Part shown: positions 2,464 to 58,170 of the stretch, one piece after another
How the letters are laid out: the number at the start of each line of letters is the position of its first letter
Numbering within the stretch: the first letter of the stretch is position 1
DNA from: Rebecca billardiae RCC1528
Lineage: Eukaryota; Protista; Haptophyta
Assembly: GCA_965240325.2 (NCBI GenBank)
Contig: OZ251222.1
Location: 4,588,001 to 4,652,000, forward strand
Direction of reading: 5' to 3'
Length of the DNA: 64,000 nucleotides
Made by a program: the position numbers and the translations under genes
Notes under the pieces: model-generated
What the model saw: only the letters and a program-made list of their open reading frames with translations
What the model was told of the DNA's origin: nothing
The model's database searches: none

Positions 2464-4446
2464 CCATAACTCACTCGGTAGACCCACATGAGAGTAGATT
2501 GAGGTGGGGGCCGCGTTGATAAACGCGTGAGGTGACTAGGTCACACCCCCGAAGCCGTCCAGGATGCGACGCCGACCAGAAAGGACTCGCCGATGCATTC
2601 GAGCAACTACGCCGACAGAAGCCGACCGCCTAGACGCCGAAGAGGAAGTACTCGATGGAGCACGTAGATAGACCGCAGGCGCTGGCAGCCGACGCCCACC
2701 CCCAACGCAAGTTTGGGCCGAGCGCGGCGCCGCAGGGGGCAGAGGCCTCGAGGGCCTCCACCCCCCCCGACACCGCGCGCACCCAGGCCATGCCCACCCA
2801 GCAACCAGCCGGGTGGGAGGGCAGGGAGAAACAACTCCCAGAGGAGGGGCAGCCACCAGCGCCGCGGTGACCCAGCAGCCACGCCGGCCGCCGAGCCGCG
2901 GATGCAGCCAGCGAGCGCGCGCAGAGAGGCGCATCGCTTGCCAAGCTACTGCGCGGATCCGCGCCCACCCCCTGTCCGGGCCTGGCTCGGCTTGACGACC
3001 GGAAAACCTTCGGGCAGCCGGACCCGGGCTGCCAGCCCGCCCTCATGAGGGCTACCGGTGAGTTATACCCGCATAACCGAGCGGTTATACAACCATAACT
3101 CACTCGGTAGACCCACATGAGAGTAGATTGAGGTGGGGGCCGCGTTGATAAACGCGTGAGGTGACTAGGTCACACCCCCGAAGCCGTCCAGGATGCGACG
3201 CCGACCAGAAAGGACTCGCCGATGCATTCGAGCAACTACGCCGACAGAAGCCGACCGCCTAGACGCCGAAGAGGAAGTACTCGATGGAGCACGTAGATAG
3301 ACCGCAGGCGCTGGCAGCCGACGCCCTCCCCCAACGCAAGTTTGGGCCGAGCGCGGCGCCGCAGGGGGCAGAGGCCTCGAGGGCCTCCACCCAGAAGGAG
3401 GTGTGGAATGCCACACCCCGTAGGGGTGGTGGCCGGGGGCCCGAAGAGGCCGAGGCCGCCGAAGGGGTAGCGCGAGGACCGAAGGCGGCCGAGGCCCAGA
3501 GGGGCTCCCCGCAGGATTGTGTGAGGACGAACCCGACGGTAAGTGCGACGAGTAGGCACAAAGACATGCGCGGCGGCGGCGGCGCAGGCGGGAAGCAGGC
3601 GCGAGACACGCACGCGCACGCGTAGCGTCAGATAAGGTAGCAGGTCGCATCCCCACACACAGCAGTGCACTGCAGACTGCAGAGGAGGCGGCAGAGAAGG
3701 AGAGAGCAGCACCCACCCGCCAGGCGATGAAGGCAAGCGAGACTGCGAAGCGTGAGAAGATTGCAGACGGGGACGCCTGGGAGCGGTTCCGAGGCGCCCC
3801 CATCGAAAGCAGAGCATGCGGAGATTGCAGACGGGGACGCCTCGAAGCGGTTCCGAGGCGCCCCCATCGAAAGCAGAGCATGAGAAGATTGCAGACGGGG
3901 ACGCCCCGAAGCGGTTCCGAGGCGCCCCAATCGAAAGCAGAGCATGAGAAGATTGCAGACGGGGACGCCCCGAAGCGGTTCCGAGGCGCCCCCATCGCAG
4001 AAAGCAGAGCATGGGACGATTGCAGACGGGGACGCCTCGAAGCGGTTCCGAGGCGCCCCCATCGAAAGCAGAGAGCACCCGGAGGGGTCCGAGGTGCCCT
4101 CGCAGCGAGCAGAAGCGACAGACAGCCCGATCGCGCGTTGGCAGCAAGCAGGGCAGGTGCACGAGTGGAGAGAGCGAGGGCTGAGGGCGCCTACCGCCGA
4201 CGCACACGCACCTGGAAGAAACAACTCCCAGAGGAGGGGCAGCCACCAGCGCCGCGGTGACCCAGCAGCCACGCCGGCCGCCGAGCCGCGGATGCAGCCA
4301 GCGAGCGCGCGCAGAGAGGCGCATCGCTTGCCAAGCTACTGCGCGGATCCGCGCCCACCCCCTGTCCGGGCCTGGCTCGGCTTGACGACCGGAAAACCTT
4401 CGGGCAGCCGGACCCGGGCTGCCAGCCCGCCCTCATGAGGGCTACC
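2464..4446. mobile_element. Non-autonomous element with split direct repeats (A-x-B-A-y-B); right end lost in the assembly gap
   Basis: Repeat A (300 bp) at 2464-2763 and 3093-3392 (one mismatch seen); repeat B (>=230 bp) at 2827-3056 and 4217-4446; unique ~63-bp spacer x; internal 64-bp minisatellite; no credible ORF. Confidence 0.7.
3754..4073. repeat. Tandem repeat, 5 x 64 bp (one unit 67 bp)
   Basis: Unit GAGAAGATTGCAGACGGGGACGCCYCGAAGCGGTTCCGAGGCGCCCCCATCGAAAGCAGAGCAT; the GATTGCAGACG anchor recurs near 3759, 3823, 3887, 3951 and 4018. Confidence 0.95.
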
Positions 4447-8752: not shown

Positions 8753-9008
8753 CTATATATATATAATATATATTAAATATATATATATAAGTCAGCATAG
8801 AGAGAGAGAGAGAGAGAGTAAGATGTCAGCAGCACGTCAATTCACGACGACTATGATGACGACTCGGCGCTGCTGCTAATATATATATCTATATCTATGT
8901 CTATATCTATATCTATATATCTATATATCTATATCTATATCTATATCTATATCTATATCTATATCTATATCTATATCTATATCTATATCTATATCTATAT
9001 CTCTCTCT
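8753..9008. repeat. Compound microsatellite region: (TA)n, (GA)n, (ATCTAT)n, (CT)n
   Basis: Directly visible; long (ATCTAT)n tract at about 8880-9000. Confidence 0.95.
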
Positions 9009-12191: not shown

Positions 12192-14764
12192 AGACCCCTT
12201 CAGGGAAATCGGCCTTGGCTTGGGTCAGCGCGCCGCTGGTGGCTTGGGTCGCACCCAAGCCACTCGCGGCTTGGCTTGGGTCAGGGAGATCATACGGAAT
12301 GCCGCTCAGATCATATGCCGTGCGCGCATGCGCGCGGCCTCGCGGCCGTGCACGGCCGCGCACGGCCGGGCACGGGCGCGGCGGGCCGGCATTGGCGGTC
12401 GCACACCAGCGCTGGGGTGCGTGGCACCCGCCCGCGCCCTCGGGGCGTGCCCGCACGCCCTCCTCCGCCGCCGCGCATCGCGCTTGTGCCTGCGGCCTCG
12501 CGGCCCGCCTGGGCGCGCCGAAAGCACGGGCGCACACCGAGCCGCTTGTGGCGCATCAGGCCCGTCGCGTGGGCGCATGGCATGGTCATTGGTGAGCATA
12601 CGCCGTCGGGCTTTCGCGATGCCGGCTGTGCGGAGCCTCCCGACCACGAGCACCGCGCGTTGCGCAGCCGAGCCCAGGCAGTGGCCGGGCTGACCGCTCG
12701 GACGCTCGGCGCCGCCAAGCAACACACCGGCGTTCAGGACGAGGCGGCACGCAGCGTATGCGGCAGCTGTAGACTACGTGCCATGCGCCAAGCCGCGTGT
12801 GGAGTGTCAGAACGACCATCTTAGCCCTCACGATCGTGCCGCGCGTGGGGATTGCACACAAGCAGTGCTCGAGCTCGCTCCGACCGCAGGCGTCGAGCTG
12901 GGAAAGCCGTGTAGTGCTGCGCGCCGGCGCGCGCGCGCGCGAGGCAGGCCTGCGCGCGGCATCGCCCGCGCCTCGGCCATCCCATCGATCGTGCTGCACT
13001 GTGAACATGATGCCAGCGGGGGCGTGATGTCAGCTATCGCCTTGTTGCGGAACACCTCCGCCACCCGCCAGCCTACTGGAGCGCTCAGCTCAGCGCTGTT
13101 GTGGCAATGCTGTGTGTGTTCGGCTGACAGCGCGAGGCAACGTTTGACAGCATGCCTTCTGCGCACGTGTGCCTACTAGGTGCGGTAGGCCTTGAAGAAC
13201 CTCAACCCGGGACTACTTGTTGCTTGTACCAGATCAGAGCGCAGAGTCAGCACTCTGACTCAGCACGTCACTGCTGTCAGTGGCGTGCCAGCAGCGCCCA
13301 GGCTGCCGGTGCTTGAGACGGCGATGCATCGAAGCCTCTGGACATTATTGCACGCTCGAAGTAGACCACGATCGCAAGTCTGTATCGGAGAACAGAACGC
13401 GTCCGGTGTACTCGCATGCCCTATCACATATCGCTGCTGCAAGTATGCCCGTGTCACATCAGACGAGTTGTCTGCCCCGGCACTCGGAATTGCTGAGGCG
13501 CGCGCGGGCCGAGCAAGCTATCAGGTCGCCACTCAGCTGCGATGAGTTGCCAGTTGATGCAATTACGGCAGCTCAACCGAGCGGGCAAACCTAAGAGCGC
13601 GTCTCAACAGCGGCAAAAGCTGCATCATAGTCTTACTGTGACCGCTGTGCTGGCATCATCGCGAGCTCGTGGGCAACAGCTGTCCCAGTACGTCGTCCAA
13701 GGCGCAGCCGACAGCGCTAAGCGTATGCTTGCGCGTGTAGATCCAAGGTTGCTTCGCTCTAGAAGGCGTGGCTCAGCTGCTGCTCGCAGTAGTCGACCAG
13801 ATATACAGATCAAGCGCGAGGACGGTGTGTAGTGCAGCGGGCGCATCATCGGCGATGCTACTGTCTTCGACTGAGGGCGTGACAGAGAACTGTCACCATG
13901 TGCCCAGCCCATGATGATGTAGGCAGCGCGCACTCACCACACCGGTATATCATTGGTGCAAGCACGATCGATGGGATGGCCGAGGCGCGGGCGATGCCGC
14001 GCGCAGGCCTGCCTCGCGCGCGCGCGCGCCGGCGCGCAGCACTACACGGCTTTCCCAGCTCGACGCCTGCGGTCGGAGCGAGCTCGAGCACTGCTTGTGT
14101 GCAATCCCCACGCGCGGCACGATCGTGAGGGCTAAGATGGTCGTTCTGACACTCCACACGCGGCTTGGCGCATGGCACGTAGTCTACAGCTGCCGCATAC
14201 GCTGCGTGCCGCCTCGTCCTGAACGCCGGTGTGTTGCTTGGCGGCGCCGAGCGTCCGAGCGGTCAGCCCGGCCACTGCCTGGGCTCGGCTGCGCAACGCG
14301 CGGTGCTCGTGGTCGGGAGGCTCCGCACAGCCGGCATCGCGAAAGCCCGACGGCGTATGCTCACCAATGACCATGCCATGCGCCCACGCGACGGGCCTGA
14401 TGCGCCACAAGCGGCTCGGTGTGCGCCCGTGCTTTCGGCGCGCCCAGGCGGGCCGCGAGGCCGCAGGCACAAGCGCGATGCGCGGCGGCGGAGGAGGGCG
14501 TGCGGGCACGCCCCGAGGGCGCGGGCGGGTGCCACGCACCCCAGCGCTGGTGTGCGACCGCCAATGCCGGCCCGCCGCGCCCGTGCCCGGCCGTGCGCGG
14601 CCGTGCACGGCCGCGAGGCCGCGCGCATGCGCGCACGGCATATGATCTGAGCGGCATTCCGTATGATCTCCCTGACCCAAGCCAAGCCGCGAGTGGCTTG
14701 GGTGCGACCCAAGCCACCAGCGGCGCGCTGACCCAAGCCAAGGCCGATTTCCCTGAAGGGGTCT
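12192..14764. mobile_element. Foldback element: 804-bp terminal inverted repeats, 965-bp spacer, 7-bp target-site duplication CAGTCCG
   Basis: 12192-12995 is the reverse complement of 13961-14764 (mirror ORFs translate identically); CAGTCCG at 12185-12191 and 14765-14771. An alternative boundary 12191-14765 gives a 5-bp TSD AGTCC. Confidence 0.92.
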
Positions 14765-22321: not shown

Positions 22322-22445
22322 GCTGGCGAAGGTTGGCGGGAGGCGGCGCCGCGGCGGCGGCGGTCGGGAGCGCTGCCGGAGGTGCGCTCGGCGAAGCGCA
22401 GAGCCGATCGAGTGCTTTGCCGTGCGCTCGCGAGCTGGGCTCGCG

Positions 22446-23551
22446 CAAGGGTACTTAAGGGTGAGCAACTCCGCTGGCGACAGCCGCGAAGGTCGGCAGC
22501 CCTCTGTTTGCCGCGAGCGGAGCGGAGCGAGTGCTATCAGCGGCGGAGGGCGCTGAGGCCGCGCACGGCGTGAGGCGCGGCGTCGGCCGAGTCGGTCCGC
22601 GGAGGATGCGCGGCGCTCGGCCCGCTGCGCAGCGGTAGTGCGCCTCACTTTGCCCCGAGCGCCGTCCTCCGCGTCGCCTCCTTCCCGCCTTGGAGCAGCA
22701 CGCATGTGCGCGCCGCCACCTTGAAGGCGGCACGGGCTTGCTCAGACGACCGCGCGCGCGTGGCGCGCGACTTGGTCGGCTGCGCGCGCGCGCCGCCGCG
22801 GTGCAAGGTAGCGCCACCGCATGCGCGCGCCGTGCCAGCGCGAGAGCGTGTGCGCGGACCTGAGTGCGACCTCACACACATGTCGAATGCTGCTTGGCAT
22901 CCGACTTGCGGACTGACGGGAAGCTGGAAAAGACAGCGGCGTGAGTGTTGGTCCCATCGATGCGGAGCCTTAGCGTCCACTTGCATTCGTGCTGAGAAGG
23001 AATAGACAAGACTAGGCCTTCGTCCTGGGTATCCAATGTCACTCAACACCTCGCTGATCGACCCGACGAGTGCCAGCGTGAGGCACAGCAAATCATTCGT
23101 GAGAGCAAGCAGACAAGCGAGCACTACGCTCATGAGATGGCCGTGAGCAAAGGCTCGCGCGGGCACGGCGCGCGCATGCGGCGGCGCTACCTTGCACCGC
23201 GGCGGCGCGCGCGCGCAGCCGACCAAGTCGCGCGCCACGCGCGCGCGGTCGTCTGAGCAAGCCCGTGCCGCCTTCAAGGTGGCGGCGCGCACATGCGTGC
23301 TGCTCCAAGGCGGGAAGGAGGCGACGCGGAGGACGGCGCTCGGGGCAAAGTGAGGCGCACTGCCGCTGCGCAGCGGGCCGAGCGCCGCGCATCCTCCGCG
23401 GACCGACTCGGCCGACGCCGCGCCTCACGCCGTGCGCGGCCTCAGCGCCCTCCGCCGCTGATAGCACTCGCTCCGCTCCGCTCGCGGCAAACAGAGGGCT
23501 GCCGACCTTCGCGGCTGTCGCCAGCGGAGTTGCTCACCCTTACTACCCTTG
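22446..23551. mobile_element. Foldback element, 1106 bp, ~399-bp TIRs, CAAGGG...CCCTTG termini, 7-bp TSD GCTCGCG (P-superfamily-like ends)
   Basis: 22446-22844 is a near-perfect reverse complement of 23154-23551; GCTCGCG at 22439-22445 and 23552-23558. Confidence 0.92.
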
Positions 23552-23807
23552 GCTCGCGAACGTCGTCGACTACTCGACTCGTCGTCGTCCTTCCCGCCTT
23601 CCGCCTCCCTTTCGGTTTGGCCTTTCCGCTTACGACCGGCCTCGCGAGAGCGTCTCACGATGGCGGCGGTGCCGGGGCCGGCTTGGTGGTGGGCTATCTC
23701 CGCACGGGTACCATCTCACGCCGGGCGATCCGGCTGCTAGCAGTATGCTTTCGCCGGCGAGTGCCGCTGGCCCACCGGCCGCCACCGCGCGGCGCCCCCG
23801 CCTCGCG

Positions 23808-32660: not shown

Positions 32661-35600
32661 ATGCGGGCACGGCCGCTGGCGGCGCTCCTTGCGCTCGCGA
32701 GCATCGCCTCGGTGACCGCTGGTTCGTGCCGCACCATCTCGATCTCGACGAGCGCCCAGCTCGCGGACGCCATCGACGACCTCGAGAAGTGCGACACGCT
32801 CGAGCTCGCGCCCGGCACGTACCCCGTGGCCTCCCAGCTCAAGCTGGACAAGGACGACGTGACGCTCACGTGCCCGGCGGGCACGGCCGTGCTCAGCCCG
32901 TCAGGCCGCTTGAACAAGCCCCTGCTCAAGCTGCATGACTCGGACGGCCTGCTGCTGCACAACCTGCGCTTCAGCCACGCGCCCGCCGGCGGCGTGTACG
33001 TGCACAAGTCGCCCGCGACGATCAGCAACTGCACCTTCTACGACGGCGCCGCCGCGCAAGGGTCGGGCGTGTACATCCACCAGAGCGAGGGCGTCGCGCT
33101 CGTCAACTGCGAGTTCCGCGACAGCTCGTCCAGCGGCCAGGGCGCGGGCGTGTACGCGCACCAGTCGAGCGGCACCATCTCAGACTGCCGCTTTGCGCAG
33201 CTGAGCGCGGACTCGTCCGGCGGCGCGCTCTTCTCGCACCAGGGCTCGCTCGCCGTGCAGAACACCGAGTTCGTGGACTGCCAGGCGCAGCAGGGCGGCG
33301 CGTGGTACGTCAACCAGGCCGGCGGCGAGAGCTCGTGCACGGGCTGCGCGTTCACGAGCGCGCGTGCGCACGGCAGCGGCGGCGCGCTCTTTGTGAACGG
33401 CGGCGCGCTGCGCCTCGCCGAGAGCACGCTGAGCGGCTGCGAGGCGGGCGCGGATGGAGGCGCGGCGTACGTCGTGGGCAACGGCGCGCACCTCACACTC
33501 ACGCATGCCACCCTCGCCGCCAATAGCGCCGGCAGCTCGGGCGGCGCCCTCGCAGCCGAGAGCGCGGCCGTGACGCTGGCCGACAGCTCGCTCACGCACA
33601 ACGCGGCCGGGGCCGAGGGCGGCGCCGTGCTGCTGCGCGGCTCGGCGTCGCTTGAGCTGGTCGGGTGCAACCTCTTCGAGAGCAACGCCGCCGGCGGCTC
33701 CGACCTCTGCGAGGCCGTCGCGAAAGTGAACAGCCCGACTGCGCAGTGCGCCGGCGGCGTGGCTGCCGGTGCCGCGTGCTCGGACGCAGCGGCGAGCGCG
33801 GCATGCGAGGGGTGCGGGGCCGCGACACCGTCGCCGCCGTCCTCGCCGCCGCCGCCCACGGCCGGTGCCACATCGCCACCGCCACCGCCAAGCCCGTCGC
33901 CGCCGCCTTCGCCGCCACCGCCACCGCCAAGCCCGTCGCCACCGCCGCCGCCTTCGCCGCCGCCGCCGTCCGCTCCGCCGCCGCCGCCGCCAAGCCCGCC
34001 GCCACCGCCGCCGACCGGTGCGCACGGCTCGCCGCCGCCGCCGAGCCCGTCGCCGCCGCCTTCGCCGCCACCGCCACCGCCAAGCCCATCACCACCGCCG
34101 CCGCCTTCGCCACCGCCGCCATCCGCACCGCCGCCGCCGCCGCCAAGCCCGCCGCCACCGCCGCCGACCGGTGCGCACGGCTCGCCGCCGCCGCCGAGCC
34201 CGTCGCCGCCGCCTTCGCCGCCACCGCCACCGCCAAGCCCATCACCACCGCCGCCGCCTTCGCCACCGCCACCATCCGCACCGCCGCCGCCGCCGCCAAG
34301 CCCGCCGCCACCGCCGCCGACCGGTGCGCACGGCTCGCCGCCGCCGCCGAGCCCGTCGCCGCCGCCTCCGTCATCGCCGCCGCCGCCGACCGGTGCGCAG
34401 GGTTCGCCGCCGCCACCGAGCCCGTCGCCGCCGCCTTCGCCGCCACCACCGCCGCCGAGCCCGTCGCCGCCGCCGCCGCCTTCGCCGCCGCCGCCAACCG
34501 CTCCGCCGCCGCCGCCGCCAAGCCCGCCGCCACCGCCGCCGACCGGTGCGCACGGCTCGCCGCCGACACCGAGCCCGTCACCGCCGCCTCCGTCATCGCC
34601 GCCGCCGCCGACCGGTGCGCACGGCTCGCCGCCGCCGCCGAGCCCGTCACCGCCGCCTTCGCCGCCACCACCGCCGCTGAGCCCGTCGCCGCCGCCGCCG
34701 CCTTCGCCGCCGCCGCCGTCCGCTCCGCCGCCGCCGCCGCCAAGCCCGCCGCCACCGCCGCCGACCGGTGCGCACGGCTCGCCGCCGCCACCGAGCCCGT
34801 CGCCGCCGCCTTCGCCGCCACCGCCACCGCCGAGCCCGTCGCCGCCGCCGCCGCGTTCGCCGCCGCCGCCGTCCGCTCCGCCGCCGCCGCCGCCAAGCCT
34901 GCCGCCACCGCCGCCGACCGGTGCGCACGGCTCGCCGCCGCCGCCGAGCCCGTCGCCGCCGCCTTCGCCGCCACCACCGCCGCCGAGCCCGTCGCCGCCG
35001 CCGCCGCCTTCGCCGCCGCCGCCGTCCGCTCCGCCGCCGCCGCCGCCAAGCCCGCCGCCGCCGCCGCCGACCGGTGCGCACGGCTCGCCGCCGCCGCCGA
35101 GCCCGTCGCCGCCGCCTTCGCCGCCACCACCGCCGCCGAGCCCGTCGCCGCCGCCGCCGCCTTCGCCGCCGCCGCCGTCCGCTCCGCCGCCGCCGCCGCC
35201 AAGCCCGCCGCCACCGCCGCCGACCGGTGCGCACGGCTCTCCGCCGCCGCCGAGCCCGTCACCGCCGCCTCCGTCATCGCCGCCGCCGCCGCCTACCGGT
35301 GTGCACGGCTCGCCGCCGCCACCGAGCCCGTCGCCGCCGCCTCCGTCATCGCCCTCCTCGTCGCCCTCGCCCCTCGGCAGCCCTCCGCCCGCCGGGGGCT
35401 ACGAGGCGTGCACGCCCGGCTACTGGAAGAACCACCTCCCGCAGTGGGCGCCCGCCGCCATCTCGCCCTCCAGCGCGTTCAACGCGCACTTCGCGCTCTC
35501 GCCAGCAGAGTCGGGCTGGTCCGACCGCGCAGGCGCCGCGGGCGCGTGGGAGCTGCTCGAGGTGATGCAGGATGGCGCCCGAACGCACAACGCCCACGGC

Positions 35601-36192
35601 AACAACTGGTGGCAGCTCTCGCGCACCGCTGCCGCGGCCGTGCTCAACGCGGGCCACCCTGACGTGACGTACCCGCTCACCGCGGCGGAGGTGATCACGA
35701 TGGTGGGGGACGCGATGCAGCTGCCGCCCGAGGACTTCCAGGCGGAGGTGGAGCGCGTGAAGACGCTGCTCGACGACATGCACAACGAGTGGCCGTGCCC
35801 GCTCGGCAATGCGCTGCCCGAGCCGAGACCGCCGCCTGCGCAGCCCTCACTGCCGTCGCCGCCAAGCTCGCCAGCGCCGTCGCCGCCGTCGTCGCCGCCA
35901 AGCCCGCCGCCTCCGCAGCCCTCGCCGCAACCACCGCCGCCATCCGCGCCGCCACCACCGCCGCCGCAGCCCTCACCACCGCCACCAAGTGCGCCTCCGC
36001 CGCCGCCACCGTCGCCGCCGCCGAGCCCGCCGCCACCGCCACCGCCATCTCCGCCACCATCGCCGCCGCCGCCTAGCTCGCCACCGCCGCCACCGCCGTC
36101 ACCGCCGCCGAGCCCGCCACCCAGCCCGCCACCACCAAGCCCGCCACCGCCACCACCACCCTCTCCGCCGCCGTCGCCGCCGCCGCCCAGCT

Positions 36193-36223
<31 letters not shown>

Positions 36224-39200
36224 CAGCCCGCCACCGAGCCCACCGCCGCCGTCTCCGCCGCCGCCTCCGCCGCCATCGCCACCGCCATCGCCGCCACCGC
36301 CCAGCTCGCCACCGCCGCCACCGCCGTCGCCGCCGCCGAGCCCTCCACCCAGTCCGCCGCCGCCGAGTCCGCCGCCACCACCGCCGCCATCTCCGCCGCC
36401 GTCACCACCGCCGCCCAGCTCGCCACCGCCGCCACCGCCGTCGCCACCACCGAGCCCGCCGCCACGCCCGCCACCGCCGAGCCCGCCACCGCCACCGCCA
36501 CCGTCGCCGCCTCCATCGCCGCCGCCGCCCAGCTTGCCGCCCCCTCCGCCACCGTCGCCGCCACCGAGCCCGCCGCCCAGCCCGCCACCGCCGAGCCCGC
36601 CGCCGCCACCGCCGCCATCTCCGCCGCCGTCACCACCGCCGCCCAGCTCGCCACCGCCGCCACCGCCGTCGCCACCACCGAGCCCGCCGCCAAGCCCGCC
36701 ACCGCCGAGCCTGCCACCGCCACCGCCGCCATCGCCACCACCGTCGCCCCCACCGCCATCTCCGCCACCGAGCCCACCCCCGCCGTCGTTGCCACCCACG
36801 CCACCTCCGCCTTGCAACGGCAATGGCGCGGTTCAGGCGACTGCGTACTCGGGCGGTCCTCCGACGGGCTACTCGTGCGTGCCGGACGACAAGGCGGGGC
36901 CTCCCCGGCCGCGCCGCCTGTCGAGTGTGCCTGACGTGGTGGGTGCGCGTGACGAGGACGAGTGCGCTGCCGCGCTGTACAGCGTGTGCTCGGTGTTCAG
37001 CTTCTGGGCGGACACGGGCGAGTGCTACTGCTGCCCGGACCCGTTCACGCTCTACCCGCGCCCGTCTGCATCGTTGTGGGAGTCGGAGTGGGTGTGCCCG
37101 CCACCGCCGCCACCGCCATCGCCGCCACCGAGCCCGCCACCGAGCCCTCCACCACCGAGCCCGCCACCGCCACCACCACCATCTCCGCCGCCGTCGCCGC
37201 CGCCGCCCAGCTCGCCACCGCCGCCGCCGCCGTCGCCACCGCCGAGCCCGCCTCCGAGCCCCCCGCCGCCGTCTCCGCCACCGCCACCACCGCCGAGCCC
37301 ACCTCCATCGCCTCCACCGCCGAGCTCGCCGCCGCCCCCACCACCGTCACCACCGCCCAGCCCGCCACCGAGCCCCCCGCCGCCGTCTTCGCCACCGCCA
37401 CCGCCGCCGAGCCCGCCTCCATCGCCGCCGCCACCGAGCTCGCCGCCGCCGCCACCGCCGTCGCCACCGCCCAGCCCGCCACCGAGCCCACCGCCGCCGT
37501 CTCCGCCACCGCCACCGCCGCCGAGCCCGCCTCCATCGCCGCCGCCACCGAGCTCGCCGCCGCCGCCACCGCCGTCGCCACCGCCCAGCCCGCCACCGAG
37601 CCCACCACCACCGAGCCCGCCACCGCCACCGCCGCCGTCGCCGCCGCCATCTCCACCGCCGAGTCCGCCACCACCGAGCCCTCCTCCGCCGCCTCCACCG
37701 TCACCGCCGCCGAGCCCTCCACCGAGCCCGCCGCCGCCGAGCCCGCCGCCGCCACCGCCGCCATCTCCGCCGCCGTCACCACCGCCGCCCAGCTCGCCAC
37801 CGCCGCCACCGCCGTCGCCACCACCGAGCCCGCCGCCAAGCCCGCCACCGCCGAGCCTGCCACCGCCACCGCCGCCATCGCCACCACCGTCGCCCCCACC
37901 GCCATCTCCGCCACCGAGCCCACCCCCGCCGTCGTTGCCACCCACGCCACCTCCGCCTTGCAACGGCAATGGCGCGGTTCAGGCGACTGCGTACTCGGGC
38001 GGTCCTCCGACGGGCTACTCGTGCGTGCCGGACGACAAGGCGGGGCCTCCCCGGCCGCGCCGCCTGTCGAGTGTGCCTGACGTGGTGGGTGCGCGTGACG
38101 AGGACGAGTGCGCTGCCGCGCTGTACAGCGCGTGCTCGGTGTTCAGCTTCTGGGCGGACACGGGCGAGTGCTACTGCTGCCCGGACCCGTTCACGCTCTA
38201 CCCGCGCCCGTCTGCATCGTTGTGGGAGTCGGAGTGGGTGTGCTCGCCACTGCCGCCACCTTCGCCACCACCGCTGCCCCCGCCATCCCCACCGTCGCCG
38301 CCGCCGAGCCCGCCACCGCCGCCACCGCCATCGCCGCCACCGAGCCCGCCACCGAGCCCTCCACCACCGAGCCCGCCACCGCCACCACCACCCTCTCCGC
38401 CGCCGTCGCCGCCGCCGCCCAGCTCGCCACCGCCGCCGCCGCCGTCGCCACCGCCGAGCCCGCCTCCGAGCCCTCCGCCGCCGTCTCCGCCACCTCCACC
38501 ACCGCCGAGCCCACCTCCATCGCCTCCACCGCCGAGCTCGCCGCCGCCCCCACCACCGTCACCACCGCCCAGCCCACCACCGAGCCCCCCGCCGCCGTCT
38601 CCGCCGCCGCCACCGCCGCCGAGCCCGCCTCCATCGCCTCCACCGCCGAGCTCGCCGCCGCCCCCACCACCGTCACCACCGCCCAGCCCGCCACCGAGCC
38701 CACCGCCGCCGTCTCCGCCGCCGCCACCGCCGCCGAGCCCGCCTCCATCGCCTCCACCGCCGAGCTCGCCGCCGCCCCCACCACCGTCACCACCGCCCAG
38801 CCCGCCACCGAGGGCCCCGCCGCCGTCTCCGCCACCGCCACCGCCGCCGAGCCCGCCTCCATCGCCTCCACCGCCGAGCTCGCCGCCGCCCCCACCACCG
38901 TCACCACCGCCCAGCCCGCCACCGAGCCCACCGCCGCCGTCTCCGCCACCGCCACCGCCGCCGAGCCCGCCTCCATCGCCGCCGCCACCGAGCTCGCCGC
39001 CGCCGCCACCGCCGTCGCCACCGCCCAGCCCGCCACCGAGCCCACCACCACCGAGCCCGCCACCGCCACCGCCGCCGTCGCCGCCGCCATCTCCACCGCC
39101 GAGTCCGCCACCACCGAGCCCTCCTCCGCCGCCTCCACCGTCACCGCCGCCGAGCGCTCCACCGAGCCCGCCGCCGCCGAGCCCGCCGCCGCCACCGCCG

Positions 39201-42200
39201 CCATCTCCGCCGCCGTCACCACCGCCACCCAGCTCGCCACCGCCGCCACCGCCGTCGCCACCACCGAGCCCGCCGCCAAGCCCGCCACCGCCGAGCCTGC
39301 CACCGCCCCCACCGCCATCGCCACCACCGTCGCCCCCACCGCCATCTCCGCCACCGAGCCCACCCCCGCCGTCGTTGCCACCCACGCCACCTCCGCCTTG
39401 CAACGGCAATGGCGCGGTTCAGGCGACTGCGTACTCGGGCGGTCCTCCGACGGGCTACTCGTGCGTGCCGGACGACAAGGCGGGGCCTCCCCGGCCGCGC
39501 CGCCTGTCGAGTGTGCCTGACGTGGTGGGTGCGCGTGACGAGGACGAGTGCGCTGCCGCGCTGTACAGCGTGTGCTCGGTGTTCAGCTTCTGGGCGGACA
39601 CGGGCGAGTGCTACTGCTGCCCGGACCCGTTCACGCTCTACCCGCGCCCGTCTGCATCGTTGTGGGAGTCGGAGTGGGTGTGCTCGCCGCTGCCGCCACC
39701 TTCGCCACCACCGCTGCCCCCGCCATCCCCACCGTCGCCGCCGCCGAGCCCGCCACCGCCGCCACCGCCATCGCCGCCACCGAGCCCGCCACCGAGCCCT
39801 CCACCACCGAGCCCGCCACCGCCACCACCACCATCTCCGCCGCCGTCGCCGCCGCCGCCCAGCTCGCCACCGCCGCCGCCGCCGTCGCCACCGCCGAGCC
39901 CGCCTCCGAGCCCTCCGCCGCCGTCTCCGCCACCGCCACCACCGCCGAGCCCACCTCCATCGCCTCCACCGCCGAGCTCGCCGCCGCCCCCACCACCGTC
40001 ACCACCGCCCAGCCCGCCACCGAGCCCCCCGCCGCCGTCTCCGCCGCCGCCACCGCCGCCGAGCCCGCCTCCATCGCCTCCACCGCCGAGCTCGCCGCCG
40101 CCCCCACCACCGTCACCACCGCCCAGCCCGCCACCGAGCCCACCGCCGCCGTCTCCGCCACCGCCACCGCCGCCGAGCCCGCCTCCATCGCCTCCACCGC
40201 CGAGCTCGCCGCCGCCCCCACCACCGTCACCACCGCCCAGCCCGCCACCGAGCCCCCCGCCGCCGTCTCCGCCGCCGCCACCGCCGCCGAGCCCGCCTCC
40301 ATCGCCTCCACCGCCGAGCTCGCCGCCGCCCCCACCACCGTCACCACCGCCCAGCCCGCCACCGAGCCCACCGCCGCCGTCTCCGCCACCGCCACCGCCG
40401 CCGAGCCCGCCTCCATCGCCGCCGCCACCGAGCTCGCCGCCGCCGCCACCGCCGTCGCCACCGCCCAGCCCGCCACCGAGCCCACCACCACCGAGCCCGC
40501 CACCGCCACCGCCGCCGTCGCCGCCGCCATCTCCACCGCCGAGTCCGCCACCACCGAGCCCTCCTCCGCCGCCTCCACCGTCACCGCCGCCGAGCCCTCC
40601 ACCGAGCCCGCCGCCGCCGAGCCCGCCGCCGCCACCGCCGCCATCTCCGCCGCCGTCACCACCGCCGCCCAGCTCGCCACCGCCGCCACCGCCGTCGCCA
40701 CCACCGAGCCCGCCGCCAAGCCCGCCACCGCCGAGCCTGCCACCGCCACCGCCGCCATCGCCACCACCGTCGCCCCCACCGCCATCTCCGCCACCGAGCC
40801 CACCCCCGCCGTCGTTGCCACCCACGCCACCTCCGCCTTGCAACGGCAATGGCGCGGTTCAGGCGACTGCGTACTCGGGCGGTCCTCCGACGGGCTACTC
40901 GTGCGTGCCGGACGACAAGGCGGGCCCTCCCCGGCCGCGCCGCCTGTCGAGTGTGCCTGACGTGGTGGGTGCGCGTGACGAGGACGAGTGCGCTGCCGCG
41001 CTGTACAGCGTGTGCTCGGTGTTCAGCTTCTGGGCGGACACGGGCGAGTGCTACTGCTGCCCGGGCCCGTTCACGCTTTACCCGCGCCCGTCTGCATCGT
41101 TGTGGGAGTCGGAGTGGGTGTGCTCGCCACTGCCGCCACCTTCGCCACCACCGCCGCCTCCGCCATCCCCACCGTCGCCGCCGCCGAGCCCGCCACCGCC
41201 GCCACCGCCATCGCCGCCACCGAGCCCGCCACCGAGCCCTCCACCACCGAGCCCGCCACCGCCACCACCACCATCTCCGCCGCCGTCGCCGCCGCCGCCC
41301 AGCTCGCCACCGCCGCCGCCGCCGTCGCCACCGCCGAGCCCGCCTCCGAGCCCCCCGCCGCCGTCTCCGCCACCGCCACCACCGCCGAGCCCACCTCCAT
41401 CGCCTCCACCGCCGAGCTCGCCGCCGCCCCCACCACCGTCACCACCGCCCAGCCCGCCACCGAGCCCACCGCCGCCGTCTCCGCCGCCGCCACCGCCGCC
41501 GAGCCCGCCTCCATCGCCTCCACCGCCGAGCTCGCCGCCGCCCCCACCACCGTCACCACCGCCCAGCCCGCCACCGAGCCCCCCGCCGCCGTCTCCGCCG
41601 CCGCCACCGCCGCCGAGCCCGCCTCCATCGCCTCCACCGCCGAGCTCGCCGCCGCCCCCACCACCGTCACCACCGCCCAGCCCGCCACCGAGCCCACCGC
41701 CGCCGTCTCCGCCACCGCCACCGCCGCCGAGCCCGCCTCCATCGCCGCCGCCACCGAGCTCGCCGCCGCCGCCACCGCCGTCGCCACCGCCCAGCCCGCC
41801 ACCGAGCCCACCACCACCGAGCCCGCCACCGCCACCGCCGCCGTCGCCGCCGCCATCTCCACCGCCGAGTCCGCCACCACCGAGCCCTCCTCCGCCGCCT
41901 CCACCGTCACCGCCGCCGAGCCCTCCACCGAGCCCGCCGCCGCCGAGCCCGCCGCCGCCACCGCCGCCATCTCCGCCGCCGTCACCACCGCCGCCCAGCT
42001 CGCCACCGCCGCCACCGCCGTCGCCACCACCGAGCCCGCCGCCAAGCCCGCCACCGCCGAGCCTGCCACCGCCACGGCCGCCATCGCCACCACCGTCGCC
42101 CCCACCGCCATCTCCGCCACCGAGCCCACCCCCGCCGTCGTTGCCACCCACGCCACCTCCGCCTTGCAACGGCAATGGCGCGGTTCAGGCGACTGCGTAC

Positions 42201-45200
42201 TCGGGCGGTCCTCCGACGGGCTACTCGTGCGTGCCGGACGACAAGGCGGGGCCTCCCCGGCCGCGCCGCCTGTCGAGTGTGCCTGACGTGGTGGGTGCGC
42301 GTGACGAGGACGAGTGCGCTGCCGCGCTGTACAGCGTGTGCTCGGTGTTCAGCTTCTGGGCGGACACGGGCGAGTGCTACTGCTGCCCGGACCCGTTCAC
42401 GCTCTACCCGCGCCCGTCTGCATCGTTGTGGGAGTCGGAGTGGGTGTGCTCGCCGCTGCCGCCACCTTCGCCACCACCGCTGCCCCCGCCATCCCCACCG
42501 TCGCCGCCGCCGAGCCCGCCACCGCCGCCACCGCCATCGCCGCCACCGAGCCCGCCACCGAGCCCTCCACCACCGAGCCCGCCACCGCCACCACCACCAT
42601 CTCCGCCGCCGTCGCCGCCGCCGCCCAGCTCGCCACCGCCGCCGCCGCCGTCGCCACCGCCGAGCCCGCCTCCGAGCCCTCCGCCGCCGTCTCCGCCACC
42701 GCCACCACCGCCGAGCCCACCTCCATCGCCTCCACCGCCGAGCTCGCCGCCGCCCCCACCACCGTCACCACCGCCCAGCCCGCCACCGAGCCCCCCGCCG
42801 CCGTCTCCGCCGCCGCCACCGCCGCCGAGCCCGCCTCCATCGCCTCCACCGCCGAGCTCGCCGCCGCCCCCACCACCGTCACCACCGCCCAGCCCGCCAC
42901 CGAGCCCACCGCCGCCGTCTCCGCCACCGCCACCGCCGCCGAGCCCGCCTCCATCGCCTCCACCGCCGAGCTCGCCGCCGCCCCCACCACCGTCACCACC
43001 GCCCAGCCCGCCACCGAGCCCCCCGCCGCCGTCTCCGCCGCCGCCACCGCCGCCGAGCCCGCCTCCATCGCCTCCACCGCCGAGCTCGCCGCCGCCCCCA
43101 CCACCGTCACCACCGCCCAGCCCGCCACCGAGCCCACCGCCGCCGTCTCCGCCACCGCCACCGCCGCCGAGCCCGCCTCCATCGCCGCCGCCACCGAGCT
43201 CGCCGCCGCCGCCACCGCCGTCGCCACCGCCCAGCCCGCCACCGAGCCCACCACCACCGAGCCCGCCACCGCCACCGCCGCCGTCGCCGCCGCCATCTCC
43301 ACCGCCGAGTCCGCCACCACCGAGCCCTCCTCCGCCGCCTCCACCGTCACCGCCGCCGAGCCCTCCACCGAGCCCGCCGCCGCCGAGCCCGCCGCCGCCA
43401 CCGCCGCCATCTCCGCCGCCGTCACCACCGCCGCCCAGCTCGCCACCGCCGCCACCGCCGTCGCCACCACCGAGCCCGCCGCCAAGCCCGCCACCGCCGA
43501 GCCTGCCACCGCCACCGCCGCCATCGCCACCACCGTCGCCCCCACCGCCATCTCCGCCACCGAGCCCACCCCCGCCGTCGTTGCCACCCACGCCACCTCC
43601 GCCTTGCAACGGCAATGGCGCGGTTCAGGCGACTGCGTACTCGGGCGGTCCTCCGACGGGCTACTCGTGCGTGCCGGACGACAAGGCGGGGCCTCCCCGG
43701 CCGCGCCGCCTGTCGAGTGTGCCTGACGTGGTGGGTGCGCGTGACGAGGACGAGTGCGCTGCCGCGCTGTACAGCGTGTGCTCGGTGTTCAGCTTCTGGG
43801 CGGACACGGGCGAGTGCTACTGCTGCCCGGACCCGTTCACGCTCTACCCGCGCCCGTCTGCATCGTTGTGGGAGTCGGAGTGGGTGTGCTCGCCACTGCC
43901 GCCACCTTCGCCACCACCGCTGCCCCCGCCATCCCCACCGTCGCCGCCGCCGAGCCCGCCACCGCCGCCACCGCCATCGCCGCCAGCGAGCCCGCCACCG
44001 AGCCCTCCGCCACCGAGCCCGCCACCGCCACCACCACCCTCTCCGCCGCCGTCGCCGCCGCCGCCCAGCTCGCCACCGCCGCCGCCGCCGTCGCCACCGC
44101 CGAGCCCGCCTCCGAGCCCCCCGCCGCCGTCTCCGCCACCGCCACCACCGCCGAGCCCACCTCCATCGCCTCCACCGCCGAGCTCGCCGCCGCCCCCACC
44201 ACCGTCACCACCGCCCAGCCCGCCACCGAGCCCCCCGCCGCCGTCTCCGCCACCGCCACCGCCGCCGAGCCCGCCTCCATCGCCGCCGCCACCGAGCTCG
44301 CCGCCGCCCCCACCGCCATCGCCACCGCCCAGCCCGCCACCGAGCCCACCACCACCGAGCCCGCCACCGCCACCGCAGCCGTCGCCGCCGCCATCTCCAC
44401 CGCCGAGTCCGCCACCACCGAGCCCTCCTCCGCCGCCTCCACCGTCACCGCCGCCGAGCCCTCCACCAAGCCCGCCACCGCCGAGCCTGCCACCGCCACC
44501 GCCACCGTCGCCGCCTCCATCGCCGCCGCCGCCCAGCTTGCCGCCCCCTCCGTCACCGTCGCCGCCACCGAGCCCGCCGCCGAGCCCGCCACCGCCGAGC
44601 CCGCCACCGCCACCGCCACCGTCGCCGCCTCCATCGCCGCCGCCGCCCAGCTTGCCGCCCCCTCCGCCACCGTCGCCACCACCGAGCCCGCCGCCCAGCC
44701 CGCCACCGCCAAGTCAGCCGCCGCCACCGCCGCCATCGCCACCACCGTCGCCCCCACCGCCATCTCCGCCACCGAGCCCACCCCCGCCGTCGTTGCCACC
44801 CACGCCACCTCCGCCTTGCAACGGCAATGGCGCGGTTCAGGCGACTGCGTACTCGGGCGGTCCTCCGACGGGCTACTCGTGCGTGCCGGACGACAAGGCG
44901 GGGCCTCCCCGGCCGCGCCGCCTGTCGAGTGTGCCTGACGTGGTGGGTGCGCGTGACGAGGACGAGTGCGCTGCCGCGCTGTACAGCGTGTGCTCGGTGT
45001 TCAGCTTCTGGGCGGACACGGGCGAGTGCTACTGCTGCCCGGACCCGTTCACGCTCTACCCGCGCCCGTCTGCATCGTTGTGGGAGTCGGAGTGGGTGTG
45101 CTCGCCGCTGCCGCCACCTTCGCCACCACCGCTGCCCCCGCCATCCCCACCGTCGCCGCCGCCGAGCCCGCCACCGCCGCCACCGCCATCGCCGCCACCG

Positions 45201-48200
45201 AGCCCGCCACCGAGCCCTCCACCACCGAGCCCGCCACCGCCACCACCACCAAGCCCGCCGCCGCCGAGCCTGCCGCCGCTCCCGCCGCCATCGCCGCCGC
45301 CGTCGCCACTGCCGCCCAGCTCGCCACCGCCGCCACCGCCGTCACCGCCGCCGAGCCCGCCACCCAGTCCGCCACCGCCGAGCCCGCCGCCGCCTCCGCC
45401 GCCGTCGCCGCCGCCATCTCCACCGCCGAGTCCGCCACCACCGAGCCCTCCTCCGCCGCCTCCACCGTCACCGCCGCCGAGCCCTCCACCAAGCCCGCCC
45501 CCGCCGAGCCCGCCGCCGCCACCGCCGCCATCTCCGCCGCCGTCACCACCGCCGCCCAGCTCGCCACCGCCGCCACCGCCGTCGCCACCACAGAGACCGC
45601 CGCCAAGCCCGCCACCGCCGAGCCCGCCACCGCTACCGCCACCGTCGCCGCCTCCATCGCCACCGCCGCCCAGCTTGCCGCCCCCTCCGCCACCATCGCC
45701 GCCACCGAGGCCGCCGCCCAGCCCGCCACCGCCAAGTCAGCCGCCGCCACCGCCGCCATCGCCACCACCGTCGCCCCCACCGCCATCTCCGCCACCGAGC
45801 CCACCCCCGCCGTCGTTGCCACCCACGCCACCTCCGCCTTGCAACGGCAATGGCGCGGTTCAGGCGACTGCGTACTCGGGCGGTCCTCCGACGGGCTACT
45901 CGTGCGTCTTTGACGACAAGGCGGGGCCTCCCCGGCCGCGCCGCCTGTCGAGTGTGCCTGACGTGGTGGGTGCGCGTGACGAGGACGAGTGCGCTGCCGC
46001 GCTGTACAGCGTGTGCTCGGTGTTCAGCTTCTGGGCGGACACGGGCGAGTGCTACTGCTGCCCGGACCCGTTCACGCTCTACCCGCGCCCCTTCTCCGAC
46101 CTATGGGAGTCGGAGTGGGTGTGCTCGCCGCAGCCGCCGCCACCAGGCCCGCCGCCAAGTCCACCACCTCCCAGCCAACCTCCCCCGCAACCACCTTCGC
46201 CACCGCCTTCGCCGCCGCCACCGGTCGCTGGTAGTGGCGGCCCTGGCGGGCCCACTCCGCCACCGTCGCCGCCGCCTTCGCCGCCACCCTCGCCGCCATC
46301 ATCGCCGCCACCGCCTCCCCCGAATCCGTCGCCTCCGCCCACCAGCGCCGGCAGCGGCGGCGGACCCACGCCGCCGCCCTCGCCGCCGCCCTCGCCGCCG
46401 CCTCCGGGCGACTGGATCAGCCAGGCGGTCGAGGAGCTGCTCGGCCTGGGCGTGCTGCCGGACCCAGAGCCTTCGACGACCGCTTCGTCCGCGACGTCCG
46501 CGCCCACAGACGACGACGGCGACGGCGGCGGCGGTGGCGCGGACGAGACGTTTGGCGAGGCGAGCTACCGCGCCGACCGTGTCAACGAGGCGGTGGACGA
46601 CTTCCTCGTGCGCCAGATCAGCAGCACTGGGCCGGGCGTGACGAGCGTCTCGAGCGTGGAGACGCAGTACGGCACGGCTGGCATCGTGCTGCGGGGCGTC
46701 GGCACCTCGACGTTCGGGCTGAGCGACATTGTCGTCGACTCGCCCGCCGTGCCGGTGTCGGACGGCGACACGGCCGCCGCCACGTTCACCATCCCAGTGT
46801 CCACGCTCGAGTTCATGCTGGGCCGCGGGCTGCTCAACGTGACCAACGCGTCCGAGATCCGCTCGCTGCACGTGGCCGTCGTGCTGTGGGAGAACAACTA
46901 CCGCGCGTTCGCCGGGCTCGACGGGTTCGTCCTGGCGGACACGCTCACGAGCGTGACCGTGTGGCTCAACGGCGCGCCGCTCGACGTGGACTTCACGCAG
47001 CTCACGCAGCCGGGCGAGGCGCCGCCCGTGGTGACGATCTCGCTGCCGGTCGACCCGTCCGTGCTGCCGGCCGAGAGCGCGGGCTTCAGCTGCCGCTTCT
47101 GGGGCGGTGAGGCGTGGGTGAACAAGGGGTGCGTGGACGTGGGCGACCCGCTCGACTCGGTGGTCGAGTGCGAGTGCACGCACCTCACCGACTTCATCGC
47201 CGTGTACGAGGCGAGCGCCGCGCCCAGCGAGGACCCCGGCCTGGCCTCGACCGACCCGCCGCTCAACGTGAATGCGATCTCGCTCGACCGCGTGAGCTTC
47301 TCGTACTCTGCGCTGGTGATCCTCTTCTTCCTGCTGCTGGTCTACGCCTCGCTCTACTACTGCGCGCACAGGCGGGACCGGCACATCGAGCGCGAGCCAT
47401 TCGTGCCGCTGTGGAAGCGCAAGGAGGACGAGCACCTGTGCTACGCGCTCGGCGCCGCGCTGATCTCGCGCTCGACCGTCTCGTGGTGGCTCGCGCGGCT
47501 GCCGGGCGAGCTGGACACGTCGCGGCAGCGCGTGACGGTGCTGTACAACACTCTGCTCGCCGAGCTGCTGATGATCCTCGTCTTCATCGGGCAGGACAAC
47601 TCGCTCGCGCACCAGGTGCTCACGCTCGCCGCGGTCTCGATCGCGGCGGGCGTGCCCTTCGAGTTCGCCATCCACTTCCTCTTCCGCTGGGCGAACCGGC
47701 GCCGCCCGCTGCACCGGCTCAAGGCGAAGCTCATCAAGAAGTACGGCCGAGAGCTCAGGCAGCGGACGCTGTGGCGCCGCTTCTGCGGCTGCTGCGCGCG
47801 CGTGCTCCCCTTCCGCCTCGGCCTCGCGCCGCGCGAGGAGGAGTTCACCTCGGCTGTGCAGCACGCGCCGACGGATGACGACCTCTCGCCGCGTCGCCCG
47901 TCGCGCCCGTCGGACGGAGCGCCGGTCACACCCGTCCCGACGTCACCGCCGCCCAGCCCGCCGGTGCTTGAGCCGGCACCGGGCTCGCGCTTTGGCTCGC
48001 TCGTCGCGCGCGTGCGCGCACAGCCGTCGCTGGGGGACGACGAGGCTGCGGAGGCAGCTGCAGAGTTAGACGAGGCGGTGGACGTGGGCGCCGCGCGTGC
48101 CTCGCTCGAGCGGCGTGCCTCGCAGCTCGGCCTGCCGCAGGACTGGCACGACCTGATCGCCGACGACGACTCGGAGACGTCGTCGCGGCCGGCGCTGCGG

Positions 48201-49514: not shown

Positions 49515-49694
49515 CATGACTGCCAAATACTGCGGAAACAGGGGCAGGCGTCGGGCGCCTATCGCAAGCCTTGACACTTGCAAGAACGGTTCAGCCATCA
49601 TCCATCGTTGTCCGGCCATGATGTGCCACCGACCGTTACTTCTCGCCACAAGGCGTGTAACGTCACATTCACATTTCGAATAATATCTACTTCC

Positions 49695-50800
49695 CAAGGG
49701 AGGTCCGGGCCGGGAGCTCCCAGCGAGCGGCCAGCGCGACATCACCTCAAGGTTTTTTCCTGAGCGCCGGGCGGCAGCGGCGGCGAGGGCGGTGCTCCGC
49801 TGGCGGGGCGCGCACGGGGCACGGCGCTGCGGGCGCGGATGTGCCCGCAGAGCCGGCGCGTGCGGACGGGCTGTTGCGGGAGAGCATCTGGCGCCCTCCT
49901 GCGCCGCGCGCATTGCGCCACGCCTCTTTCGCCTTGACTCAGGGCAGCGCGCACATGCGCGCCGCGTCAAGGCCAGCCTTGCCGCGCCGCAGCCGACCGC
50001 GCGCGCGCCGTGCGCGGCGTGGTCGGGAAGGAACGGGCGTGGCTGCCGGGCGAGATGGCGACATCACGTGCGCACGCCATGCCGCCCCGCCACGCCTTGA
50101 CGAGCGTGTCGCCGGTCCGTTTGCACGCCTCTTCGAGTTGTCTCAAATGGTCTGCACGGCCTCGCGGTCGCGACCCTTGTCGGGACGATCATTGAGACAC
50201 AGAACAGTGCCAGACGGGCACGCGGACTACTCTTACATGAATGTCCATCACCACGTGGCCATGTAGAAGTGCTGGGTGCGACGCTTTCCTCGCGCTGATG
50301 CACTTTCATCATCTTTTTCGAGCTCAGGTCTGGCTTCAGGCACGGCAAGAAATCAGCACTCGTCAACAGCTGTGCGGATCCGTTATCGCGCCCTTTCGCG
50401 GCGCCGCGGGACGACATGGCGTGCGCACGTGATGTCGCCATCTCGCCCGGCAGCCGCGCCCGTTCCTTCCCGACCACGCCGCGCACGGCGCGCGTGCGGT
50501 CGGCTGCGGCGCGGCAAGGCTGGCCTTGACGCAGCGCGCATGTGCGCGCTGCCCTGAGTCAAGGCGAAAGAGGCGTGGCGCAATGCGCGCGGCGCAGGAG
50601 GGCGCCAGATGCTCTCCCGCAACAGCCCGTCCGCACGCGCCGGCTCTGCGGACACATCCGCGCCCGCAGCGCCGTGCCCCGTGCGCGCCCCGCCAGCGGA
50701 GCACCGCCCTCGCCGCCGCTGCCGCCCGGCGCTCAGGAAAAACCTTGAGGTGATGTCGCGCTGGCCGCTCGCTGGGAGCTCCCGGCCCGGACCTCCCTTG
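49695..50800. mobile_element. Foldback element, 1106 bp, ~396-bp TIRs, CAAGGG...CCCTTG termini, 7-bp TSD TACTTCC (P-superfamily-like ends)
   Basis: 49695-50090 is a near-perfect reverse complement of 50406-50800; TACTTCC at 49688-49694 and 50801-50807. Confidence 0.93.
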
Positions 50801-51247
50801 TACTTCCGCTTGCCCAACCATAGGACAATTTTCATCATGCTTCATACCTTATGTAAGTCTCGTTAGGGCTTCCGCATATTTGCTCTAACCAACTGCCCTT
50901 TTTCGGCGTTTCGGTGCAGCCCCGGCTCGAGGTTCACGAATTCGCGATGACGAAATGGTCATTTGCGGCCTCGCCGAGGAACTATGAAATGCGCGAGATT
51001 CCCGCCCGTCCTTTCGGATAGTGCTTAATTGATGTAAGTACTATGCAGAGGTGCGGAGAAACTGTATTGACCTGATATGTGGGTGATCTTCATCAAGCTG
51101 CATCCGATGGCCGCGCATCCAAATTCAATCTCGAAATCGGGGCTACAGCGGAGCAGGGCCTCATCAGCGGGGCGCCTGGTGCCACAGAGACAACGTGTTC
51201 GAGCATTCGCACGCACGGAAGCGAGGGCCCTCGTCCGAAGGGCCACG

Positions 51248-54737: not shown

Positions 54738-54768
<31 letters not shown>

Positions 54769-55028: not shown

Positions 55029-55059
<31 letters not shown>

Positions 55060-55319: not shown

Positions 55320-55350
<31 letters not shown>

Positions 55351-56300: not shown

Positions 56301-56331
<31 letters not shown>

Positions 56332-57074: not shown

Positions 57075-57105
<31 letters not shown>

Positions 57106-57572: not shown

Positions 57573-57603
<31 letters not shown>

Positions 57604-58139: not shown

Positions 58140-58170
<31 letters not shown>

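Follow-up and report, generated by a model that had tools for sequence, protein, structure and literature searches.

The foldback layout, in which inverted arms able to form a hairpin make up most of a transposon, is familiar from the Drosophila Foldback (FB) element, whose arms consist of tandem repeats and whose insertions are flanked by 9-bp target-site duplications (TSDs). Termini of the form CANRG are the rule given in Repbase for the P superfamily. Enzymes that form a hairpin on the flanking DNA (hAT, Transib and RAG) remove the whole element and leave no tips of 8-16 nt behind. TSDs in the P superfamily measure 7-8 bp, and those of its members 1360 and Galileo 7 bp (PMC3698922); the P-element transposase itself cleaves with a 17-nt stagger (PMC7776569). 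Galileo, a P-superfamily transposon of Drosophila, has non-autonomous copies with two terminal inverted repeats (TIRs), which range from 18 to 1250 bp and carry internal tandem repeats and conserved tips (PMC3573991, PMC4168063), and its target is GTANTAC (PMC4168063). BuT5, a miniature inverted-repeat element (MITE) of a divergent Drosophila P element, is about 1 kb long, non-coding, size-homogeneous and moderately abundant, has the same ends as an identified master P element and is presumed to be moved in trans by a P-type transposase (PMC3698922).

The elements considered here, E1 and E2, lie in the window, by which we mean the whole 64,000-nucleotide stretch of Rebecca billardiae DNA that was analysed (G000:C1:4588001-4652000, from a very GC-rich assembly of 72 Mb in 41 contigs). 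The architecture reported for them in the initial annotation, namely CAAGGG...CCCTTG ends, 7-bp TSDs, GC-rich arms of about 400 bp, a lower-GC spacer and a length of 1106 bp, is present in both. Their parts are listed below in window positions, with arm lengths and identities taken from an inverted-repeat finder and BLAST.

22439-22445, no strand: left TSD of E1, GCTCGCG, the same 7-mer as at 23552-23558
22446-23551, no strand: E1, a non-coding foldback transposon of 1106 bp with ends CAAGGG/CCCTTG
22446-22844, plus strand: left arm of E1, 399 nt, GC 0.74, with tip CAAGGGTACTTAAGGG
22747-22779, plus strand: conserved inner-arm block CGACCGCGCGCGCG..TGGTCGG in the left arm of E1, common to E1 and E2
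22845-23153, no strand: spacer of E1, 308-309 nt, GC 0.57, homologous to that of E2 only when the two are oppositely oriented
23154-23551, minus strand: right arm of E1, 98.7% complementary to the left arm
23219-23251, minus strand: mirror copy of the conserved block CGACCGCGCGCGCG..TGGTCGG in the right arm of E1
23552-23558, no strand: right TSD of E1, GCTCGCG, a perfect match to the left TSD
49688-49694, no strand: left TSD of E2, TACTTCC, the same 7-mer as at 50801-50807
49695-50800, no strand: E2, a non-coding foldback transposon of 1106 bp with ends CAAGGG/CCCTTG
49695-50096, plus strand: left arm of E2, 402 nt, GC 0.76
49994-50026, plus strand: conserved 33-nt inner-arm block in the left arm of E2
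50097-50399, no strand: spacer of E2, 302-303 nt, GC 0.57, between the arms
50400-50800, minus strand: right arm of E2, 97.8% complementary to the left arm, with 10 differences
50801-50807, no strand: right TSD of E2, TACTTCC, a perfect match to the left TSD

The open reading frames (ORFs) within E1 and E2 gave no Pfam match, no Rfam family was found between window positions 12000 and 51000, and no tandem arrays were reported inside either element (22446-23551 and 49695-50800).

In their hairpin-forming layout, with arms that make up most of the element, E1 and E2 resemble FB, from which they differ in the unique sequence of the arms and in the 7-bp TSDs. With Galileo they share foldback-like long arms around a spacer, a 7-bp TSD, a palindromic target of the G...C type (GTANTAC in Galileo, GYYNRRC in the E1 and E2 families; PMC4168063), the occurrence of subfamilies that differ in their ends but not in their body, and insertion into relatives (PMC3573991, PMC4168063). 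They are distinct from Galileo in that their geometry is uniform, their arms lack tandem repeats and their outer 60-100 bp, CAAGGG aside, vary most, and their host is an alga rather than a fly. The likeness to BuT5 lies in size, homogeneity, lack of coding capacity and presumed movement in trans; BuT5, however, has very short TIRs and 8-9-bp TSDs in place of arms of about 400 bp, and its ends match those of a master P element (PMC3698922), whereas none with matching ends was found for E1 and E2.

Both elements belong to dispersed families. The E1 family comprises at least 40 scored copies that are 91-99% identical, and the E2 family at least 25 copies at 99.5-100% identity, at least 10 of which are identical over all 1106 bases and sit at unrelated sites. 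Perfect 7-bp TSDs, again at unrelated sites, flank 40 of the 46 full copies extracted from the genome sequence. The 33-nt inner-arm block common to both families has 567 matches in the genome, against 6 for a reversed-pattern control, and hence about 280 elements would carry it. E1 and E2 are real, recently mobile, gene-less DNA transposons of two related families. Because the copies differ in their flanks and TSDs, an assembly artefact or a simple palindrome was rejected as an explanation. Like MITEs, they are non-coding, have TIRs and TSDs, and occur in many homogeneous copies with tight length modes; at 1.1 kb they are large by MITE standards, though similar in size to BuT5. They constitute an ordinary new family of hairpin transposons, probably P-type, and not a new kind of element.

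Insertion would proceed by a 7-bp staggered cut at loosely palindromic targets. The consensus of 40 TSDs is the loose palindrome GYYNRRC, with G at position 1 in 26 of them (p = 2e-4), a pyrimidine at position 2 in 31 and a purine at position 5 in 32; pyrimidines are favoured at positions 2-3 and purines at positions 5-6. Several copies have landed within a relative's tip or re-use a relative's TSD. E1 copies are inserted in the tips of E2b elements at two loci (L007, L018), and at a third (L050:378-2614, G000:C8) an E2b adjoins an E2, the two being separated and flanked by three CCTCAGC 7-mers. In the latter case the second insertion re-used the target of the first exactly.

The initial annotation had noted that E1 and E2 align only in patches, and this similarity is real. 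In global alignment the arms are 60% identical, which scores z = 8.7 and 9.4 when set against 200 dinucleotide shuffles; both elements also contain the block CGACCGCGCGCGCG..TGGTCGG. The inner arms are better conserved than the tips; with the exception of CAAGGG, conservation is lowest in the outer 60-100 bp. The spacers are similar when E1 is read on the plus strand and E2 on the minus strand (z = 5.4), as opposed to z = 1.5 in the same orientation; judged from these alignments, the E1 and E2 lineages differ by a flip of the spacer, which points to recombination between the arms. When the family consensus sequences are aligned with the spacer flipped, only 4-5 gap events are needed per arm, and these lie at mirror positions. 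The arm homology and the mirrored gaps together argue that the two families are collinear descendants of one foldback ancestor.

We propose, with a probability of roughly 0.72 for the account as a whole, that E1 and E2 are sister foldback families moved by a P-type enzyme acting in trans, that their geometry is inherited, and that their arms are reset at the level of founder lineages. Under this proposal both would descend collinearly from one ancestor of roughly 1.1 kb, and cut-and-paste transposition would rely on transposase supplied from elsewhere. Size and arm/spacer layout would be mainly inherited, since the few indels would be transferred from one arm to the other, and the length mode would be sharpened by MITE-style bursts from a few master copies.

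The identical length of the two window copies had been taken as a sign of conserved size. Both copies do measure 1106 bp, but this is not a family property: the modal length is 1105 in the E1 family (7 of 19 copies) and 1106 in the E2 family (13 of 26 copies). The window copy of E1 owes its length of 1106 rather than 1105 to a private insertion of 1 nt in the left tip (CAAGGGTACTTAAGGG in place of the family tip CAAGGGTAGTAAGGG), and the exact match is thus partly chance, as the initial annotation had itself allowed. An equal length in two copies needs a family-level check before it is read as a constraint. At that level, E1-old copies span 1130-1134 bp and those of the older E2 group, E2o, 1107-1121 bp; E2b, which combines a body about 92% identical to that of E2 with unrelated 58-bp tips, measures 1109 bp. 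In a third tip family, CAAGGGTGTCC, about 20 pairs of ends lie 1094-1119 bp apart, with a mode of 1112 (C1:4910755-4911866 and C7:1776668-1777779 are examples), and its length outliers are explained by nested insertions (for instance 2228 = 1112 + 1109 + 7). E1, E1-old, E2, E2o, E2b and the CAAGGGTGTCC family thus all fall within 1094-1134 bp. Other CAAGGG-type ends are spaced quite differently, those of CAAGGGGCTTACAAAA at 237-293 bp (mode 269, about 17 pairs) and those of CAAGGGAGATAGCCGT at 1811 and 5143 bp (the latter at C13:1278351-1283493); the CAAGGGTGTCC, CAAGGGGCTTACAAAA and CAAGGGAGATAGCCGT families are placed by the coordinates of their end motifs only. Given that other CAAGGG-ended families measure about 269 bp, 1.8 kb and 5.1 kb, a length of 1.1 kb is not imposed by the transposition system. 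The sharp mode near 1.1 kb belongs to one clade, and CAAGGG-ended lengths overall are broad.

It might be argued instead that functional selection acts on the 1.1-kb size and the 400/300/400 layout, perhaps through a fixed spacing between inner-arm blocks and tips that the transposase or the hairpin requires, and that unrelated or very diverged families are held at this geometry or converge on it. At least six families and subfamilies, including the CAAGGGTGTCC family with its mode of 1112, share the narrow range of 1094-1134 bp, and the better conservation of inner arms than of tips would also fit such selection. So would the scarcity of indels, of which there is about one for every 7 substitutions among the private changes of copies and about one for every 19-27 between families, 3-4 times fewer per substitution, although at 60% identity indels are under-called. 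In the lineage of E3, another foldback with a 7-bp TSD, arm spacing differs by 20-40% between relatives that are 70% identical, which lends the argument some further weight. Against this, E1 and E2 are collinear homologues, so that descent suffices; the lengths of subfamilies do vary, from 1105 to 1134 bp; the CAAGGG-ended families of other sizes speak to the same effect; and homogeneous size is a general trait of MITEs (PMC3698922). We therefore regard functional selection as an unlikely explanation of the layout as a whole, while some selective constraint on geometry may nonetheless have acted. The claim that geometry is conserved more strongly than sequence holds within the clade, where it is mostly a matter of inheritance. 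Both outcomes that had been named beforehand as contrary to that claim, a broad distribution of lengths and collinear membership of one lineage, were observed in part.

The history of the arms is recorded in how their differences are paired. Between E1 and E2, 163 differences are mirrored in both arms and 14 are confined to one; the corresponding counts are 64 and 11 between E2 and E2b and 27 and 8 between E2 and E2o. Mirrored differences in such numbers are beyond the reach of independent mutation, and one arm must repeatedly have been copied onto the other. That this happens continuously, by gene conversion within every resident copy, appears very improbable. The mirrored differences do require some arm-to-arm copying, and the arms are 98-100% alike in most sampled copies (100% identical in L056). 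Ten E2 arm differences, however, have been inherited unchanged by all identical E2 copies, of which there are at least 10, so that arm copying does not accompany each transposition; and the older copies L022, L028, L057 and L060 carry 14-25 one-arm changes (about 25 in L057 and L060), so that there is no steady equalising of the arms in place. The per-copy counts of private mirrored changes carry a baseline artefact from the trimming of arm ends, and these counts were used only for the one-arm changes of the old copies. The near-identity of arms that the initial annotation saw as maintained in each copy is accordingly a feature of lineages and breaks down in old residents.

Our preferred account would have the arms reset occasionally, at the level of a founder lineage, by the recopying of one arm from the other or its conversion by the other, and this rare re-symmetrising would be followed by decay of the resident copies arm by arm. 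As to the route, we infer intramolecular recombination or, alternatively, snap-back synthesis while the excision gap is being repaired. Either would copy indels to both arms and in so doing preserve the layout.

Further evidence on the mode of transposition comes from sites that elements appear to have left. The pattern CAAGGGWR-N(0-30)-YWCCCTTG occurs at 50 sites in the genome, against 1 for the control, and these scars consist of transposon tips, from several families, joined together. The majority measure 16-20 bp and retain 8-10 nt per end, while some scars of 34 and 38 bp retain at least 16 nt per end. One scar (L015:1483-1499), located inside an E1 tip, consists of 9+8 nt from E2 tips with a GTAAGGG repeat on either side, the product of an insertion followed by an excision. 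Excision would on this evidence involve a long staggered cut within each transposon end, so that between 8 and at least 16 nt of each tip stay at the donor site. Some scars are longer than 17+17 nt (38-52 bp), and some of these long scars may derive from incomplete gap repair rather than from direct end joining.

The CAAGGGGCTTACAAAA family, with about 130 ends in units of about 269 bp (for example C3:338258-338526), also has at least 8 sites with an identical 38-bp unit composed of 16 + 6 + 16 nt (C1:3242549-3242586; L012:2641-2678). These 38-bp units are either stereotyped excision scars or mobile micro-elements.

The scars bear directly on the class of enzyme involved. Read directly, the CAAGG of the E1 and E2 ends matches the CANRG pattern, and it matches the YARNG rule of hAT elements as well; a search of the full-text literature for CANRG returned no transposon paper. 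A transposase of another class, such as a RAG1/Transib-like or Dada-type enzyme, might be thought to move E1 and E2, and the absence of any terminal match between them and the P-type gene on C21 (described below) would be in keeping with this. We nevertheless consider it unlikely, given 50 scars with transposon tips where hAT, Transib and RAG enzymes would leave none. The long retained tip segments fit instead the 17-nt stagger, which is peculiar to the P-element transposase (PMC7776569), and the P-like reading is supported to that extent. A P-type mechanism is well supported by the scars, the palindromic target and the presence of P-type genes in the genome, and the link from enzyme to element is circumstantial.

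Two P-type loci were found in the genome:

G000:C21:1532845-1536795 (L063:3843-7796), minus strand: ORF of a P-type transposase, 1317 uninterrupted codons, single-copy, with PF21787
G000:C11:2635935-2636558, plus strand: second, more divergent P-type match, profile E 2.8e-12, in a 926-codon frame

The C21 locus was the sole match of a whole-genome Pfam search for the P-type RNase H domain. Its protein scores above the cut-off for PF21787 and below threshold for PF21788 and PF21789 (GBD, RNaseH_C), in the correct order, and D820, D933, D995-x-x-H998 and E1219, the residues of the DDE triad and D(2)H motif, do not vary across an alignment of 32 sequences. The top Foldseek match of its AlphaFold model (pLDDT 81) is the Drosophila P transposase 6p5a (E 2.5e-18, TM 0.73); RAG1 is second-best, so that an assignment to the RAG1 fold may conceal a divergent P-type enzyme, and RAG1, Transib and Hermes all fall far behind 6p5a. 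A full HMMER search recovered 645 relatives, the best of which are marine protist transcripts, and these relatives carry PF21787, PF21788 and PF12017; the last of these, the P-element HTH domain, replaces THAP in some homologues. A word-indexed protein search with the catalytic region gave no match, and a metagenome scan for related loci found no relative. Judged by its frame and residues, the C21 locus is a catalytically intact P-type transposase gene.

The predicted C21 protein thus shares with the P-element and THAP9 transposases the order RNaseH_N, GTP-binding insertion, RNaseH_C, the DDE and D(2)H residues and the best structural match. It differs from them in its 1317-aa frame, in a front half of about 800 aa that matches nothing recognised, in that no match to the THAP finger PF05485 was obtained even at E <= 10, and in being single-copy with no recognisable TIR or TSD. 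Around the ORF, a search for TIRs with a 7-bp TSD returned only chance-level matches, and no CAAGGG inverted repeat brackets it. Its flanks have no similarity to E1 or E2, and tblastn of the transposase against E1, E2 and E3 detected no coding remnant. The search for P-type elements with matching ends that the initial annotation had recommended therefore delivered the genes, but at C21 no E1/E2-type ends. Its description of the two elements as non-autonomous P-like foldbacks fares similarly: the 7-bp TSDs, the excess of scars, the palindromic target and the P-type genes all agree with it, and a master with matching ends was not found at C21. From this circumstantial evidence we infer that C21 and C11 are candidate transposases for E1 and E2. 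An element of the CAAGGGTGTCC family, 1094 bp long (C11:2643233-2644326), is located about 6.7 kb downstream of the C11 match.

The tips of E1 and E2b look composite, in that a second (C)AAGGGTG comes after a 9-10-nt CAAGGGNNN(N) segment (window 22446-22470; L050:385-410), and the E2 tip has an internal CAAGG at position 53. Speculatively, the composite tips of E1, E2b and E2 suggest that half-scars of relatives supply the material for new tips. A bolder proposal, which we find distinctly improbable, is that the 1.1-kb clade is a self-renewing hairpin replicator for which the P-type machinery needs in cis only the CAAGGG tip, the inner-arm blocks and hairpin geometry. The outer 60-100 bp would then be exchangeable modules, possibly derived from half-scars of relatives inserted in the tips (compare the tips CAAGGGAGT+CAAGGGTG), and snap-back resynthesis in gap repair would reset the arms and actively preserve length. 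If true, this would be a length-homeostatic mechanism undescribed for P-type elements.

On the account we prefer, of sister foldback families with inherited geometry, R. billardiae harbours a very young P-type transposon system, probably still active, outside the animals and in a GC-rich alga, in which hundreds of hairpin-shaped passengers lie near genes and insert into one another. The families also provide a clean natural data set on the co-evolution of long inverted arms. What has been added to the original description is the test of homology and orientation, the co-evolution of arms at founder level, the multi-modal lengths of CAAGGG-ended elements and the two candidate P-type genes.

Other repeats were noticed in and beyond the window. 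The foldback E3 (window 12192-14764, 2573 bp) has arms of about 808 nt that are 99.9% identical, a spacer of about 957 nt, ends AGACCCC...GGGGTCT and the 7-bp TSD CAGTCCG. Four full copies of it measure 2568-2576 bp, and in its relatives at 70% identity the arm segments are spaced 2219-2679 apart, as against 1870 in E3. An unrelated foldback of 898 bp with 364-nt arms (L008:2625-3522, G000:C12) has ends ATTGACACTGG and an 8-bp TSD, ACACGGTC, and is probably moved by a transposase of a different superfamily. Very long C-rich tandem arrays, with units of 15, 63-69, 114, 138, 228 and 498 bp, occupy window positions 33800-46000 and 52700-64000. Their GC content is 0.78-0.84 and their GC skew reaches down to -0.46, and on the plus strand they read as proline-rich repeats of the PPPPSP type, which suggests either giant repetitive wall-protein-like genes or satellite. 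There are also a 64-bp repeat in five tandem copies and, within a locally AT-richer stretch, an (ATATCT)21 microsatellite (window 3749-4073 and 8879-9002).
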